A stretch of 63,777 nt of DNA, counting the filler, from Reticulomyxa filosa (Eukaryota; Protista; Foraminifera), in assembly GCA_000512085.1 (NCBI GenBank). It is 26 parts of 26 records of this genome, joined end to end, with 100 filler letters (N's around TTAATTAATTAA, not from the genome) between each part and the next. Parts side by side here need not be neighbours in the genome. Positions count along the whole stretch, not along the records: positions 2,798 to 7,406 come from ASPP01045437.1; 25 more parts are not named here. One strand, 5' to 3'. Of this stretch, positions 2,581 through 10,400 are shown in pieces. How positions within the stretch are numbered: the stretch's first letter is position 1; every line of letters starts with the position of its first letter. The notes under the pieces are model-generated. The model saw nothing but the letters and a program-made list of their open reading frames with translations. It was not told the DNA's origin and made no database searches. Both the position numbers and the translations under genes were made by a program.

Positions 2581-3871
2581 TGGTTCAATGCTTATTGCTT
2601 TCTTATTTTATTTTATCATTTTTATGTACATACATACATACATATTGTATATATTATTGTTAATTAAAAAAAAAAAAAAATAATATATATATATATANNN
2701 NNNNNNNNNNNNNNNNNNNNNNNNNNNNNNNNNNNNNNNNNTTAATTAATTAANNNNNNNNNNNNNNNNNNNNNNNNNNNNNNNNNNNNNNNNNNNNTTT
2801 TTTTTTGGGCAGTTAGAAATGATTTTTTATGTTTACAAAAGGTGTGGAAGAATATTGATCGTTTGTTGACACCAAAAGAGGTATAACGTCTCAGCCGGCA
2901 AACACAAACATACTGCTGTGAGCATTTTACTATATTAATAAAAAAAAATGCGCTTATTGAATGCAAGACGGATGAAACAATGCCAAAAATTGTCTAAAAT
3001 GAATACTTAAAGATTTTCTGTATGAAAATCGACACTTTTGAAATTTTTTTTGGACGATATCTACATTCATGCGAATAAAATACTTCGTTGTAAATTGTAG
3101 AAAAAGATAAAAAAAAACGTTGATATTTGTTTCAATTTTTCCATTCAGACTTACAAAGGTAAGAATCTTACCCGTTTATTTTGATCAATTCTTTTTGAAG
3201 CCAATGTTTATTGTTTTGTTAATTCAGTATTTTATCGTGGTCACTAAGCACTAATCCAATATTTCATTTTTGTTTTTAACAGTGAAACAAATTTTTTATA
3301 CATATCCTCATCAGAACTACTAAAGTAGTTGTCGGTGAAGATATTAAATTAAAGGGAGGAGGGCTAGCATTCCAAAAAAGAAAAGAGTACTCATTGTGTT
3401 AATCAAGTCCTTAGGATTTGGTGCACAGCGGTGTGATGAGATGAAGTACTTCATATAACATATATAATGTCACAATCAGGACAAGACTGATGATCTTGCA
3501 CTTTTGCAAGAATCTATATTGAATTTTTTTAAAGTTAATGTTGCTTATTTATTTTATCCATTAATGTGTGATGGCTTGTTGTGAGTTTAGTTGGATTTTC
3601 TTTTTTAAATTATGAGGCAGGATGTACTCTTAAATTCTGTCTTATAAACAATCGGGATGAGTGTAAAGAAGCAGTCAAATATAGTATATCAAAAGTCACA
3701 TTTGACAAAAATGCCAAAGTAAATTATCAAAAAAAAAAAAGTGATTTTAACAAAAGACACGCCAGCCGTAAAGATAGTCAAACTTATTATTTTCGTTTCG
3801 AAATCCGAGTATCACACCAATAGAATTAACGAGACAAGCAATCCCGCTAAAAAACTTAAAAAAAAATATTT

Positions 3872-4290
3872 TTATTTATTACAAACTTGGCATTGCTGAA
3901 TTGGAAAACAATAAAAGTAGTAAACATTGATAACACGCCCATTACTTATCTTTTTTCTGTGAAACATTTTGAATTTGAAGTTGGGATGTCTAGCAGTGCG
4001 AAGAATTCTTTCACAAGTAATCAAATCTTTTGGACAATCAGAAGACACCCGATCTAAATATAGCATGGAAAATACAGCATAAAATTCAGAAACAGTGAAC
4101 CATCTCTTGTTAAATTCATTTTCAATAATGCAAGCTGCCATATCCACGGTTGTGTCTTGTTCCTTTGCTTCTGTCTTTTCATCTTCATTGTTTGACGAAT
4201 CATGACGAGGCGGGTCTAATACAATTGAATGTATTGAGACTCTTGTTTGAATATTTCCACGCACAGAAATTTCTGTCGATATAACTGGGC
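3872..4290 (-). CDS. Hypothetical protein or terminal exon, possible winged-helix-like domain
   Basis: Open ORF with pattern DMAACIIENEFNKRWFTVSEFYAVF...ITCERILR...GRVINVYYF; fold call is by pattern only. Confidence 0.4.
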
Positions 4291-4463
4291 GTTGCTTTGA
4301 AGTTTTTTGGTGTTTCTTATCATAGTCACTGTTATGACAACTTTCTATTCATTATCATTTCAAACACACAATAAAATGATACTTTTCAATGTTATTGTTT
4401 TTTTTTTAAAAATTGTTCAGCAAATCAGTGTTTGGTCACAAATCACAGCAAAATAATAAATAC

Positions 4464-5052
4464 CTTGGGAGCTACTGTCATCGTCCATGAGACGGTATGA
4501 ATAATATTCATGCTCTTCTTCTTTTTTTCGATTCCATATTTCTTTGACTAACAAATCAAATGCAGGAACAAGCTTTTGTTTTTCTTCTTTTGCCCAAATA
4601 CACTTGCCCTTGGACCCCCATCTCCGATGAATGCTATCATTAATCTGCATTTTGATTGCTCCCCAATGCGTTTTTGTAGAGTCAAAAGTTGATTGCTGGG
4701 ATTCATACAGTTTTTCGCATCTGTCAGTGATTTGTTCCTCCGTTAGACTTTTACTTTTTGAATCATAAAGACATTGTACAATGAGTGCATCTGCTACTAT
4801 AGCATCGTCAGGTATATAGATGTGGTTACTCAATTTTTTTTTTGCTATTGTTCCCATGTTTGACCAAAAAAAAAGTGCTTTAATCTTTAGAAATGGACAC
4901 CAACAACATAGGAGAAAGAAAAAAAGAAAACTGAAAGTATCCACAATAAATTCGATAAATTGAATTGCTTTGTTGTTGTTAATAATTTCCGATGAACCTT
5001 CACATGCATCAAACAGATCTTTCCAATGTCGAAATTTTCTTTCTCCATTTCC
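4464..5052 (-). CDS. Exon(s) encoding a HARE-HTH-like winged-helix domain, possibly the spliced continuation of the OAS-like gene at 5136-6182
   Basis: ADALIVQCLYDSKSKSLTEEQITDRCEKLY...TKTHWGAIKMQINDSI resembles the HARE-HTH consensus; candidate acceptor tttgcag near 5052 and donor CAAG|GTATTT near 4464. Confidence 0.45.
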
Positions 5053-5135
5053 TGCAAATATTGCACATGTAACACACACTTCAATATAAAAGTTGTTTTT
5101 TTTTTCTCTCTCTCTCTCTTGTCTTTTACCATCTC

Positions 5136-6182
5136 TTAACGTATAATGAAACTATCCAAAATTACAATATTGCCGGGCTCGAGGCTTTGTTTGTAATCGT
5201 TGATATCTTTAGGTTCAACCAAATACTGAAATTGGTTTTGCTGATACGGCCACTCAATTATTACTGATTTTATTTCTTTGTCGTTCACCAATGTTATCCA
5301 CTCCGTTATTTTTTTAAAAAATTGTTGAATGATGTCAAATGCTAGAATAGAGGTACTGGATTGACGTGTCTTTAACTGTTCGAATAAATGAACACAAATG
5401 ATTTCCAAGGAGTTATTCGAAAGGTGTTGCTTACCTTTCATTGCAGTATATTGCCACAGTTTCAAAAACAATACTGCCAATCGAGTGTTTTTTCCAACCA
5501 ATTCCTCTCTCATGTAATACACTCGAAGTAATGATAATGATGCACTCATGTTCTTTTCCAAAAATTTGGTCCATGCTTTATTTGCTCTGCCCATTTGTTT
5601 GATATATCTTTGATGTATTGGCGCTTCATCAATCAAGTCATTGGCAGCCATTTGTAATTGCTCTGAAGAAAATGGATACACATGCACATTGTGTTGAGTG
5701 TAATGAAATTCACAATATTGTCTTTTTGAAAATGTCCATGCTATTGCAATATGATATTCCACTCCTTTCCATATTATTTTCAAGATTGATCTTGAGTGCT
5801 CCAATATTTGTATATCATTTGTGAGAGGCCCTTTTTTTATTTTTTCAATACATTGTTTGATCCACTTCAAAATATCTTTATGTTTATTTTGGAGTAAGCC
5901 AAGATTATTATGATCCAAATGCTTCTCTTTCAAATGATATAAGAATACCAAATATCCACAAGATAATTTGGGAATGGCAAGTTGTTTTTGCACACACCCA
6001 GACAGTGCCACTCCATAAATACATGAGAACGGACACTTTGTGTTACTGTGTACCGTTTCTTTATGTTTGTCCAGTATACTGATCACCAAGTTGTTGGCAC
6101 GCTCGTAGTACAAACCACTGCCAAATGATTGAATTCTCTGTTCTAATAACTGTTGCACGTCCTCATTTCTTTGCGTTGCCAT
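5136..6182 (-). CDS. OAS/DZF-like Pol-beta nucleotidyltransferase-fold protein, paralogue A, catalytic Asp residues substituted
   Basis: [22 protein letters not shown] aligns ungapped to OAS1 [32 protein letters not shown] matches [20 protein letters not shown]...[15 protein letters not shown]...IEWP...VILD matches the OAS1 C-terminal helical domain. Confidence 0.75.
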   Translation of the reverse strand: [348 protein letters not shown]

Positions 6183-6466
6183 ATTTTTTAAAAAACCTGC
6201 AACGTCAACAAAAACAACCTTTTTTTTAACGTAAAACATGATTCAAACCACAAAAGGTATTTTTTAAGATTAAAGAATATCTTGGCTCAGAATTCTACAT
6301 AAAAACAAACAAAATCTTTTAAAAATAAATCATCGCGATTTGCGAAAGCGAACCCTTTCGTTTTCAACTTTTTTGTGTTCATTTACTTTTAGTGTTGACT
6401 TGCTCTTAATTTTTTCCTTGCAGAACCGTAAGCAAAGCACAAAGTCTATTATCTTAATTTTTAAAA

Positions 6467-7405
6467 ATGAATGGATCGAATTCTTGGTCACAAGATGTTG
6501 GAAATTTCGAAAACGTGACTGCGTCGGACATTGTTCGTTATGCGAATGATTTTGCGAACACTTTACTGAAGGGATGTAAAGAAATTGAATATTATCACAT
6601 TTACGGTGTAGTATTGTCTGGATGCGCACAAAAACAACTTATCGTCTCTGAAGTACCTTGCGGAAATTTAGTATTTTATTATTTAAATCCAACAGATTTT
6701 GACTATAACAATCTTGAACCACTTAAAACAAAACATAATGAAATTCTTAAAGGAATCAAAGTATACATCAAAGGAGCATACATTGATGTTGGAACAGAAA
6801 TAGTAAGTCATTCCGAATCAGTATTAAAAATAAAGTGGAAAGGGTTTGAGTTTCACATAACAGTAACATGGACATTTTCAGAAAGACAATATTGTAAATT
6901 TCATCGCACTAAAAATACCCCTGTATGTCTATTCTCTCCAGAAACATTGAAAGATATTGCTAATGATTTGGCTAAAGAAGTGCCAAGATATCGAAGATAC
7001 ATAAAAAATGTGGGTAGACAATGGAAAAGATTTTTAGAAAAGAACATGGATGCATCATTGTCATTACTTCGAGTGTATTACATAAATGAGAGATTGGTTG
7101 GAACGGACACGCGATTGGCAGTATTGTATTTGAAAAAATGGCAACGTGTTGCAATGGAAGGTGAAGAGAATCTTTCGAACAACTCGTTGGAAATTATTTG
7201 CACTTATTTGTCCCACAAATCGGGAGCACGTTCTCACCGGGAAATCGTTATACAATTTTTCACGTTGATGAAGCAAATCAAGGAGACCAATGAACCAGTG
7301 ATAATTCAATTTCCATATTTAGTACATAATGAGCTCCAACATTTAACTAAACCCAAATGTAGGGCAGGCGATGTAATAATTTTGGACTATCTTTACATGC
7401 GTTAA
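6467..7405 (+). CDS. OAS/DZF-like nucleotidyltransferase-fold protein, paralogue B, divergently oriented
   Basis: Shares IYGVxLSGCxQKQL, LKIxWKGxExHI, WTFSxRQYCxFH, [17 protein letters not shown], TRLAVLxLKxWQ, [10 protein letters not shown] and VILD with paralogue A. Confidence 0.75.
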   Translation: [312 protein letters not shown]

Positions 7406-10400
7406 ANNNNNNNNNNNNNNNNNNNNNNNNNNNNNNNNNNNNNNNNNNNNTTAATTAATTAANNNNNNNNNNNNNNNNNNNNNNNNNNNNNNNNNNNNNN
7501 NNNNNNTAATACATTCAATGATCCAATGACAATGCATCAACATTTTATACTTATTTTCATTTGTTTGTGGTTTCATCACCTGGTTTACCATTAATTCCAC
7601 TACTTGTGACTTTGAAGTATTCTAGTCCCTGTCAATTTAATGACAAAAAACAAATTGATTCGCTATCATCGATTTTGAGAACACACGAACAAGCAAAATA
7701 TATTTATTAAAAAAGTGATTTGGATAAATCAAAAAAAAGACAAAGCATTTGCGGTTTCACTTTGATGAAGTAATCTAATCATTTCTTGCCAATCTTGCCT
7801 GGATAACGATAACCAGATTTTTTTGTGTTGAGAAAACAATACAATCACCAAACGAATTGCAATAATCCACAATTTGAATATTTTCCACCAAATTGACACC
7901 CAAGCCATACCCAATTTGCATCTCTGATGTATATGGCATTGGAAACCACATACAACATAATATACAACTACGGGCACTTGGGTAAATGATGCACATAATA
8001 ACTGGAGTGAATGTACTGTGTTCGAGCTGAATGTTATTTGTTATGATTGCAGAACACACAACACTCCATTTTCACTTGTGCTTCGTTTATGTGCATGTCA
8101 TTTATAATTTCCCAGTGATGTATTGTGTCGGTTTTCTTTCATTCACTTTGTCTCTATGGACGTGAACACGACTTGCTTTTCACAATATGTTTGTACTCCT
8201 TGCAATGGTACATTGTCATTGTCGTCATCCCTCTTGCATACCATCCACTGCCACTTGTCATATTGTTTGAAATAGTCGATACATTCCTAAAATTATTGAT
8301 CCACATTTTCGTCTTTTTTCTTCTCATTAATCTCCTGTTCCTCTTTCATTCACTTCAAACCAAAACTAAAGTGCTTCACAATAAAGGGACCTATGTTTAC
8401 ACTGCCTTGGTTGATGCATATTACAACCACCGAAAGTATGGTGCAAACAACATATATTTACACTGACCTTTAAATAGTGGCTTTCTTTAAATCAATGTTC
8501 GTGTTTTTTTTTTTTGTCTTTTTTTTTGGTTGCATGTGTTGACGTGTGAATCTAACCATGAAACAACCAGTCTTTAAGTGATAATTGAGATATTTCGAAA
8601 AGGCTATGCTGGATACGAACAACACTGCGACGCATATATGAATTTACATTGTTTTTTTCATCTTCGTTGGTAACTCGTAATGCGATTATATTTATGACCA
8701 GCAATGTGATTGTGGACTGCTCCTCAGACGATACCTAATCAATCTGTTGAGCATTGTCCAAGATTGTCTATTTTGATTTCCATCTTATTTGTTTGCTACT
8801 TTTCCACATACAAAATTGTTCTTTGCATTGCCAACTGTGTTCAAACTATTTTTCCTTGCAATGCCTTCGTTTAATAACACCCTATTCGACGATATCAATG
8901 AATTGCTATGTTAGTACGTCGATGTTTGACTGCTATTGCACACAATTTGGAGATTATATAATTTGTCTTTTGGATTGCTTCAATCTACGGCACACATACG
9001 AAAAGAGCCAAATAATAACGCACCAATTGAAAATTATTGTGGATGGGATCGATGATGTTGAGGAAAGAGGAAGTCCTTCGATTAATTTCGATCTGTTTGA
9101 AAAAACTTGGATTTTTTCTTAGGTGTCAACAATAACTGCAACCACTTTCGTTATACAATTGATCTCCTCTTTTGGCTATGGGATTACTTGCTTGGAGTGA
9201 GGATTGCTCATTCGCGTCTCGATATGGTACCTCGGATGCAATGTTCAATTTATGAAGATGTTCCAATGCTGCAACAACTGATATCCTGGTCGTTGCAAAT
9301 TGAAGTATGTCCAATCAGTGTTCATATTTTATCGGCAATTATGGATGTAATAGAACTGCAAGTTGATGGTTGCAAGAGCATGGATGTGCAATTTGTTGTT
9401 CGGATTGTGATATTTTTTCAATAAATGAATTATTCAGATTAATACTTGGACCAATGGAACTGGACGGTGCGCTGCCGTTGTTACTAGTAACTATGCTGGT
9501 TTTGTAGTGTTGTAATTGGTTTTAGGAAATATTTGTATACTGAATGTTGAGCTAGATAGTTTGTCAAAGAGGAAATTATTGATGAAATTTTGCATAACGT
9601 GATATGAAATCGCAGGTACATCAATCAAATTGTGTTCATCAGGTTCTAACAAAAAACGAAAGACTTGAGATTGAATCACAATAAGTATATTCCATGTATT
9701 GGCGTCTGCGAAAAAGTGGAAGCCTATGGAACATCAGTTGGATTGAACGTATACTAAAAAATAAAATTGTAACACTATCTGCTGTGTTGTGATCATTACA
9801 TTCTGTACATAGCACAGTCCACTTGAACGTATATCTTTGTGGATATAAGCTTCAATTGTTGGTGAATTTTGTCAATCAGTATATGTCGAACAGAATCACC
9901 TACTTCATATTCTCTGCTTGGACCATTCTCTCATTGACTTGCAGACACTTTTGATGATATCGATAATCAAGCTAGTAGCAATTTTGCAAAAGGGCTTGCT
10001 CTTTTCTTTTTCAATTCTCTTACAAGTAGTGCGAGTGTATGTAAGTTGCATTGTCTGATATCTTGCCAGGAACATTGATGTGGATACTGTTGGTTAGCTT
10101 GTGCAATTATTGGTACTTGATTTGCCAATTTGTATGCCGACGATAATAATACACTCGAACTGCAAAACATCATAAATTCCATCACGACAATGAAACAGCA
10201 CTCCACCAAAACAACCATCTGCGTTCATATTGTAACATGCAATAGCTTTAATTGTAAAATTAGATATAATTTTTTTTCAAGCAAACACATAAAAAAATTA
10301 CTTAACTAACATTTGTTATCACCTCGTGGTAACAATAGTTTTTGGAGTCATAGCTCCCATATAAATATAAATTAAAAAATCAATTTAAATTAATTTCTTT

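Follow-up and report, generated by a model that had tools for sequence, protein, structure and literature searches.

Does a head-to-head pair of oligoadenylate synthetase (OAS)-like genes in the foraminiferan Reticulomyxa filosa, in which cysteine and histidine occupy catalytic positions, form a special two-gene module with a rewired active site? Within the whole stretch of DNA that we analysed (the window, 63,777 nucleotides joined from 26 parts), the question is raised by a 4609-bp piece whose closest homologues in homology searches are all R. filosa proteins. It carries two divergently oriented stop-free open reading frames, gene A (6182..5136, minus strand, 348 amino acids from the ATG at 6182) and gene B (6467..7405, plus strand, 312 amino acids), which share 47% identity over 295 amino acids (E = 5e-84). 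Their ATG codons are separated by an AT-rich divergent spacer of 284 bp (6183..6466), which may act as a shared promoter. The initial annotation had described two intact, diverged paralogues lying back to back about 285 bp apart. Spacing and divergence agree with our measurements, but the genes are not intact as drawn: each open reading frame represents only exon 1, with its stop codon inside a conserved intron, and gene B is truncated by the contig end. The AT-rich DNA 3' of gene A (2798-3870) contains short open reading frames only, is ~90% conserved at a second locus, L001, and gave no Rfam match. The repeat search found nothing beyond paralogy and chance AT-rich matches.

The true extent of the genes is indicated by the family. 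All paralogues examined lose their similarity at C/GTTAA (or GTTTAG, GTTTGG; boundary at the slash), beyond which lies low-complexity DNA, and the stop codons of both A and B fall inside the C/GTTAA donor of a phase-1 intron conserved among the paralogues. Gene A exon 1 (5141..6182, minus strand) encodes most of the OAS-like pseudo-nucleotidyltransferase domain. Its predicted phase-1 intron 1 of 89 nt (5052..5140, minus strand, GTTAAG...TTGCAG) contains the apparent stop codon, and after its removal from 5140..5052 the frame continues as ..IIR-NGERKFRHWKDL... Consistent with this prediction, in P0036 and P0035, which come from environmental samples and are uninterrupted, the reading frame crosses the exon 1/2 junction directly. 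Gene A is predicted to extend, on the minus strand, through a middle coding region (4464..5051) encoding the last OAS C-lobe helix (..FRHWKDL..) and a helical domain shared by the family, which may include an extra small in-frame intron (near 4850-4930), a last intron of 119 nt (4345..4463, GTATTT...GAATAG) and a last exon (3872..4344) with an acidic linker and a terminal domain of ~95 amino acids ending in CxxC, to a stop at 3872. Exon 1 of gene B (6467..7400, plus strand) encodes an OAS-like pseudo-nucleotidyltransferase, and the contig edge cuts the gene six bases into its predicted intron 1 (GTTAAA, 7401..7406, plus strand).

The NCBI model of gene A, RFI_38583 (P0044), is 100% identical over its first and last exons. 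This model codes most of intron 1 (5052-5153) and adds a doubtful upstream exon in the spacer (6302-6382), and many database models of the paralogues are likewise mis-spliced or stop at the intron stop. The annotated stop of P0023 (RFI_14454; L005 5167-6366) likewise comes after the conserved donor site, which probably makes the database protein a truncated one. The modelled terminal domain of gene A (pLDDT 52) has the order helix-strand-helix-helix-hairpin, which fits the winged-helix order H1-S1-H2-H3-S2-S3; its fold search returned weak matches, many of them winged helices (PadR, TFIIE, RTP), with a best Z of 4.0 and none significant. The model tentatively suggests a winged-helix-like fold for this domain. 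The middle domain gave weak winged-helix Pfam hints only, and the two C-terminal domains have no detectable homology to each other.

Neither open reading frame matched anything in Pfam, PADLOC or single-sequence PDB searches. In the ESM Atlas, gene B was assigned to 2'-5'-oligoadenylate synthetases (feature score 0.97, 205/256 shared), and its structure matched OAS clusters with TM scores of 0.73-0.74, ahead of DZF proteins (0.93 by features) and CBASS cyclases. An AlphaFold2 model of gene A (pLDDT 74, with residues 64-71 below 50) matched only pol-beta-type nucleotidyltransferases among known structures; porcine OAS1 ranked top (Z = 10.7, rmsd 6.5, 252 residues), with Utp22 and poly(A) polymerase tied within 1 Z. 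This match stops ~45 residues short of the OAS1 end, consistent with the last OAS helix being encoded in exon 2. A family profile including distant paralogues retrieved human OAS2 (E = 1.6e-6), as did a profile of the intact subclade alone (E = 4.1e-6), and the family profile aligned with OAS2 without gaps from the GS motif to the DxD. The OAS assignment is thus supported by sequence as well as by shape. The models confirm an OAS-type two-lobed pol-beta nucleotidyltransferase fold for A and B, as the initial annotation had proposed, and the profile link indirectly places the descent of both within the OAS clade. The comparison that it had drawn with DZF proteins fared worse, DZF being weaker than OAS in every search run. 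The Pfam OAS1_C domain (PF10421) matched neither A nor B nor any relative, including those with an intact triad.

Two-Mg catalysis by OAS1 requires D75, D77 and D148 (PMC7264852), and Ser63 contacts the triphosphate (PMC4446440). Mapped via the intact relative P0023 (profile E = 1e-40), OAS1 Ser63, Asp75, Asp77 and Asp148 correspond to Cys63, Cys75, Tyr77 (Asn in gene B) and His144. In gene A these residues lie on the minus strand in S61-G62-C63 (5994..6002, the OAS1 G-G-Ser63 P-loop), C75-G76-Y77 (5952..5960, OAS1 Asp75-x-Asp77) and His144 (5751..5753, the Asp148 position); the gene B counterparts, on the plus strand, are S51-G-C53 (6617-6625), C65-G-N67 (6659-6667) and EFHI (6848-6859). The catalytic triad and the P-loop Ser63 are both absent from A and B, and the GG preceding the Ser63 position is SG. 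All the motifs first reported (SGC, CGY or CGN, EYHI or EFHI, QYCxFH) are where they had been placed, and the loss of the Mg-binding triad stands, with C75, Y77 or Asn, and H144 replacing the aspartates. The label Cys/Cys/His needs some care, since an Asp (D75) has given way to Cys at a single position and the other Cys replaces the P-loop Ser63. QYCxFH is not part of the active-site change: its YCxF core (gene A C157-x-F-H160, 5703..5714, minus strand) is older than the substitution, being common to the triad-intact relatives, and the His after this core varies. Given the established chemistry of OAS1, canonical two-metal catalysis by A or B appears very unlikely.

The shared substitutions are not peculiar to this pair. 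Searches returned ~40 relatives, almost all of them R. filosa proteins, and in the tree at least 21 R. filosa paralogues, including A and B, form one clade with 100/100 support and a stem of 0.83; the 21 are database proteins rather than proven loci, and some may be alleles or assembly fragments. C63, C75 and Y77 are each present in 20 of the 21 members and H144 in all 21, and the second Asp position is Asn in gene B only. As both genes lie inside this single clade, their substitutions represent one inherited event. The expectation that homologues would share them was borne out within this clade, and the argument that identical substitutions mark a special pair is for the same reason unsupported. 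Outside the clade, P0023 (RFI_14454) and P0026 (RFI_15844) retain an intact triad with GGS, DGD and D, while other relatives have lost it differently (ESS, NSA, EQR, DAS). Because the triad was lost in several separate ways, pseudo-enzymes are the norm in this OAS-like family.

P0023 and P0026 are among five R. filosa sequences of a published CD-NTase tree, which sit in a eukaryotic radiation after bacterial clade C02-C03 called the OAS superfamily (PMC10732462). The main text of that study (Culbertson and Levin 2023) never mentions Reticulomyxa, and the Cys/His clade is absent from the five sequences, judged by identifiers and the sequences shown. Protein searches and scans of metagenome and viral contigs found the Cys/His clade in no organism but R. 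filosa, the contig scans returning no relative. We found no paper joining Reticulomyxa and oligoadenylate. R. filosa OAS-like genes are thus already on record, and the literature searched gave no description of the large dead Cys/Tyr/His clade or of its C-terminal domains.

Several further observations concern individual family members. A TARA scaffold of 23% GC that looks eukaryotic (L003 9241-11268) encodes an intronless 675-aa relative with GGS, N-G-D and D, next to many tandem genes of 150-250 aa sharing an IPFDIIKL-like motif. An uninterrupted relative near the intact clade (L013 153-1064, JGI 3300030627) reads through the exon 1/2 junction; it shows that the family occurs outside the R. 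filosa assembly, and its catalytic region lies beyond the contig end. A reverse-transcriptase (RVT_1) gene (L008 1337-2585) is located ~5 kb upstream of paralogue P0007. The database name of P0020, "casein kinase II regulatory subunit", had no Pfam support and was discarded.

Selection was estimated from 12 exon-1 sequences. The clade is under purifying selection, with an omega of 0.40 (2dlnL = 221 against omega = 1) and pairwise values with A or B of 0.19-0.70; the earlier suggestion of selection rather than decay is therefore supported, omega not being near 1. It is this constraint that leaves very little room for a clade of neutrally decaying, duplicated pseudogenes, along with the conserved splice donor, the complete lack of stops in gene B where neutrality predicts ~11, and the retention of otherwise invariant residues, of which B has changed 8 of 51, mostly conservatively, and A none of 45. 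Such decay is seen at L001 2780-5507, a ~90% identical duplicate of gene A and 1.1 kb of downstream DNA, in which an in-frame stop has arisen towards the end of exon 1 and ~490 bp of the middle region are missing. The terminal branches of A (omega 0.69) and B (1.2) would also fit it, both being indistinguishable from 1, with B above background (2dlnL = 15.7). Gene B is relaxed or diverging, not dead. Clade-wide positive selection was not significant in site models (2dlnL <=3.7 at best fit). For gene A, a rough branch-site test gave a signal (2dlnL = 17) that was set aside, as the grid was coarse and the first ~35 codons are unaligned to the nearest copy, which can mimic selection. Rebuilding of the old site around C63, C75 and H144 as a Zn or thiol-redox centre, serving as a structural switch or for new chemistry, is an idea that we consider rather unlikely. 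The near-complete conservation of the three residues in the clade, the synonymous changes at all three codons with the residue kept, and the rank of H144 (17 of 315 sites by constraint) are in its favour, and in OAS1 positions 75 and 148 share one metal. However, 45 of 347 columns are invariant in this clade anyway because it is young, and C75 (rank 62) and C63 (102) are less constrained than the flanking S61, G62, K66 and G76, as is Y77 (54). His144 is thus under strong constraint; for the two cysteines it does not exceed that on structural residues nearby, and P0017 has lost both of them, where C63 has become His, still a possible ligand, although P0017 lies in a decaying cluster. A bulky Tyr at position 77 occupies the middle of the pocket, we found no fourth ligand, and model residues 64-71, as noted, have low pLDDT. 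Human OAS2 does have a Cys/His Zn site, at a different place (C652/H654; bioRxiv 2025.01.28.635220).

The gene arrangement bears on a further proposal, under which A and B would be co-regulated and form an obligate NF45/NF90-type heterodimer. Besides the short divergent spacer, it could draw on L001, where P0001, the sister of A, and P0017, a relative of B, repeat the divergent layout, which may therefore predate a duplication. Yet the L001 spacer is ~1.2 kb and cannot be aligned with that of A and B. Of the nine other loci that carry a clade member, eight (L002, L006-L012) lack a divergent partner from the family in the available DNA; P0030 and P0011, both related to B, occur singly, and the relaxed branch of gene B is unlike that of an obligate partner. 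An obligate heterodimer is unsupported by gene order, and we regard it as highly improbable. The L001 copy of gene A is flanked by P0017 and the frameshifted P0018; with the stop and deletion described above, these neighbours give the cluster its decaying appearance. Neither the spacer nor the opening ~35 codons of gene A (6080-6182) align to this otherwise 90% identical copy, which suggests that a recombination or duplication had its breakpoint within exon 1. Birth and death of copies is also what weighs against a non-immune scaffold or nucleotide-sensing role in RNA processing, chromatin or organelle regulation, comparable to NF45/NF90, Utp22 or MiD51: housekeeping genes of that kind occur as conserved single copies, in contrast to a clade that turns over, is found in one species only and descends, by its profile matches, from OAS. 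Fold matches to Utp22 (Z = 9.7-10.2), NF45/NF90 (Z = 8.6) and MiD49 (Z = 8.0), the weak winged-helix hints in the C-terminal parts and the lack of detected positive selection would suit such a role, which we judge improbable overall.

By analogy with human OASL, OAS2 domain I and mouse Oas1b, which work in this way in mammals, we give about an even chance to the explanation that the proteins of this clade, A and B included, are non-catalytic binders of nucleic acid that serve as sensors or decoys or regulate the few intact paralogues. An ancestral foraminiferan OAS-like nucleotidyltransferase would have duplicated, with intact copies surviving, such as RFI_14454; one lineage lost Ser63 and all three aspartates in a single ancestor. 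This dead lineage would then have expanded through tandem and segmental duplications, with decay of some copies. Its domain would be incapable of two-Mg nucleotidyl transfer, whereas the basic OAS scaffold (exon-1 pI ~9) and the C-terminal helical and winged-helix-like domains might still bind nucleic acid, probably dsRNA, so that the proteins could work without enzymatic activity, as sensors or decoys or by regulating active paralogues, possibly in immunity. The main effect of Cys, Tyr and His may be to fill the dead pocket and keep it stable. Against a sensor role, an arms-race sensor might be expected to show the clade-wide positive selection that did not reach significance, no RNase L or STING-like partner was noticed in the vicinity, and the low-confidence C-terminal fold weakens the explanation further. 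A bolder version, in which a single conversion turned an OAS active site into a Cys2His switch, metal- or redox-based, and 21 or more winged-helix-like fusions form a sensor array over active OAS-like cyclases, or carry new chemistry in protist immunity, seems to us doubtful at best.

The R. filosa genes closest to this clade are the OAS-superfamily CD-NTases of the published tree (EukProt P025644 = RFI_14454, P024262 = RFI_15844, and three others; PMC10732462). A and B resemble this set in profile (E = 1e-40), identity (31%), ungapped active-site register and intron position, but RFI_14454 and RFI_15844 keep GGS/DGD/D, whereas A and B have SGC/CGY(N)/H and belong to the separate 21-member clade. 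Cyclases of the cGAS/cGLR and bacterial CBASS groups share the CD-NTase superfamily fold (Z = 7.4-9.3) and score below OAS; A and B gave no Mab-21, SMODS or PADLOC match, and they are eukaryotic genes with predicted introns and no adjoining effector gene. The DZF proteins NF45/NF90 likewise have an inactive nucleotidyltransferase fold and appear among the matches, but they rank below OAS in all searches, lack a sequence-profile link, and the A/B family has no Pfam match to a dsRBD or zinc finger. With an OAS fold, a broken triad and retention by selection beside triad-intact paralogues, the clade corresponds to pseudo-OAS proteins such as human OASL, domain I of OAS2 and of OAS3, and mouse Oas1b-h, which also have an incomplete triad and are kept beside active paralogues; the mouse Oas1 cluster similarly consists mostly of inactive copies. 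As animals are well known to have pseudo-OAS proteins and A and B are two of many paralogues, the pair is less singular than first thought. In contrast to the mammalian proteins, the R. filosa clade is independent in origin, has all three aspartates and Ser63 replaced, by Cys, Tyr and His, carries different C-terminal domains with no ubiquitin-like domain, and lacks an interferon or known RNase L context. To our knowledge, OAS-superfamily genes are widespread in protists and have no described function there. Since neither Pfam nor earlier HMM surveys pick up the clade, counts of protist OAS genes are probably underestimates. With a handful of intact copies beside dozens of dead ones maintained by selection, R. 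filosa independently repeats the mammalian active-plus-pseudo OAS pattern, and RFI_14454 and A/B offer a natural active/dead pair, with activity predicted, for studying OAS sensing and products without interferon.
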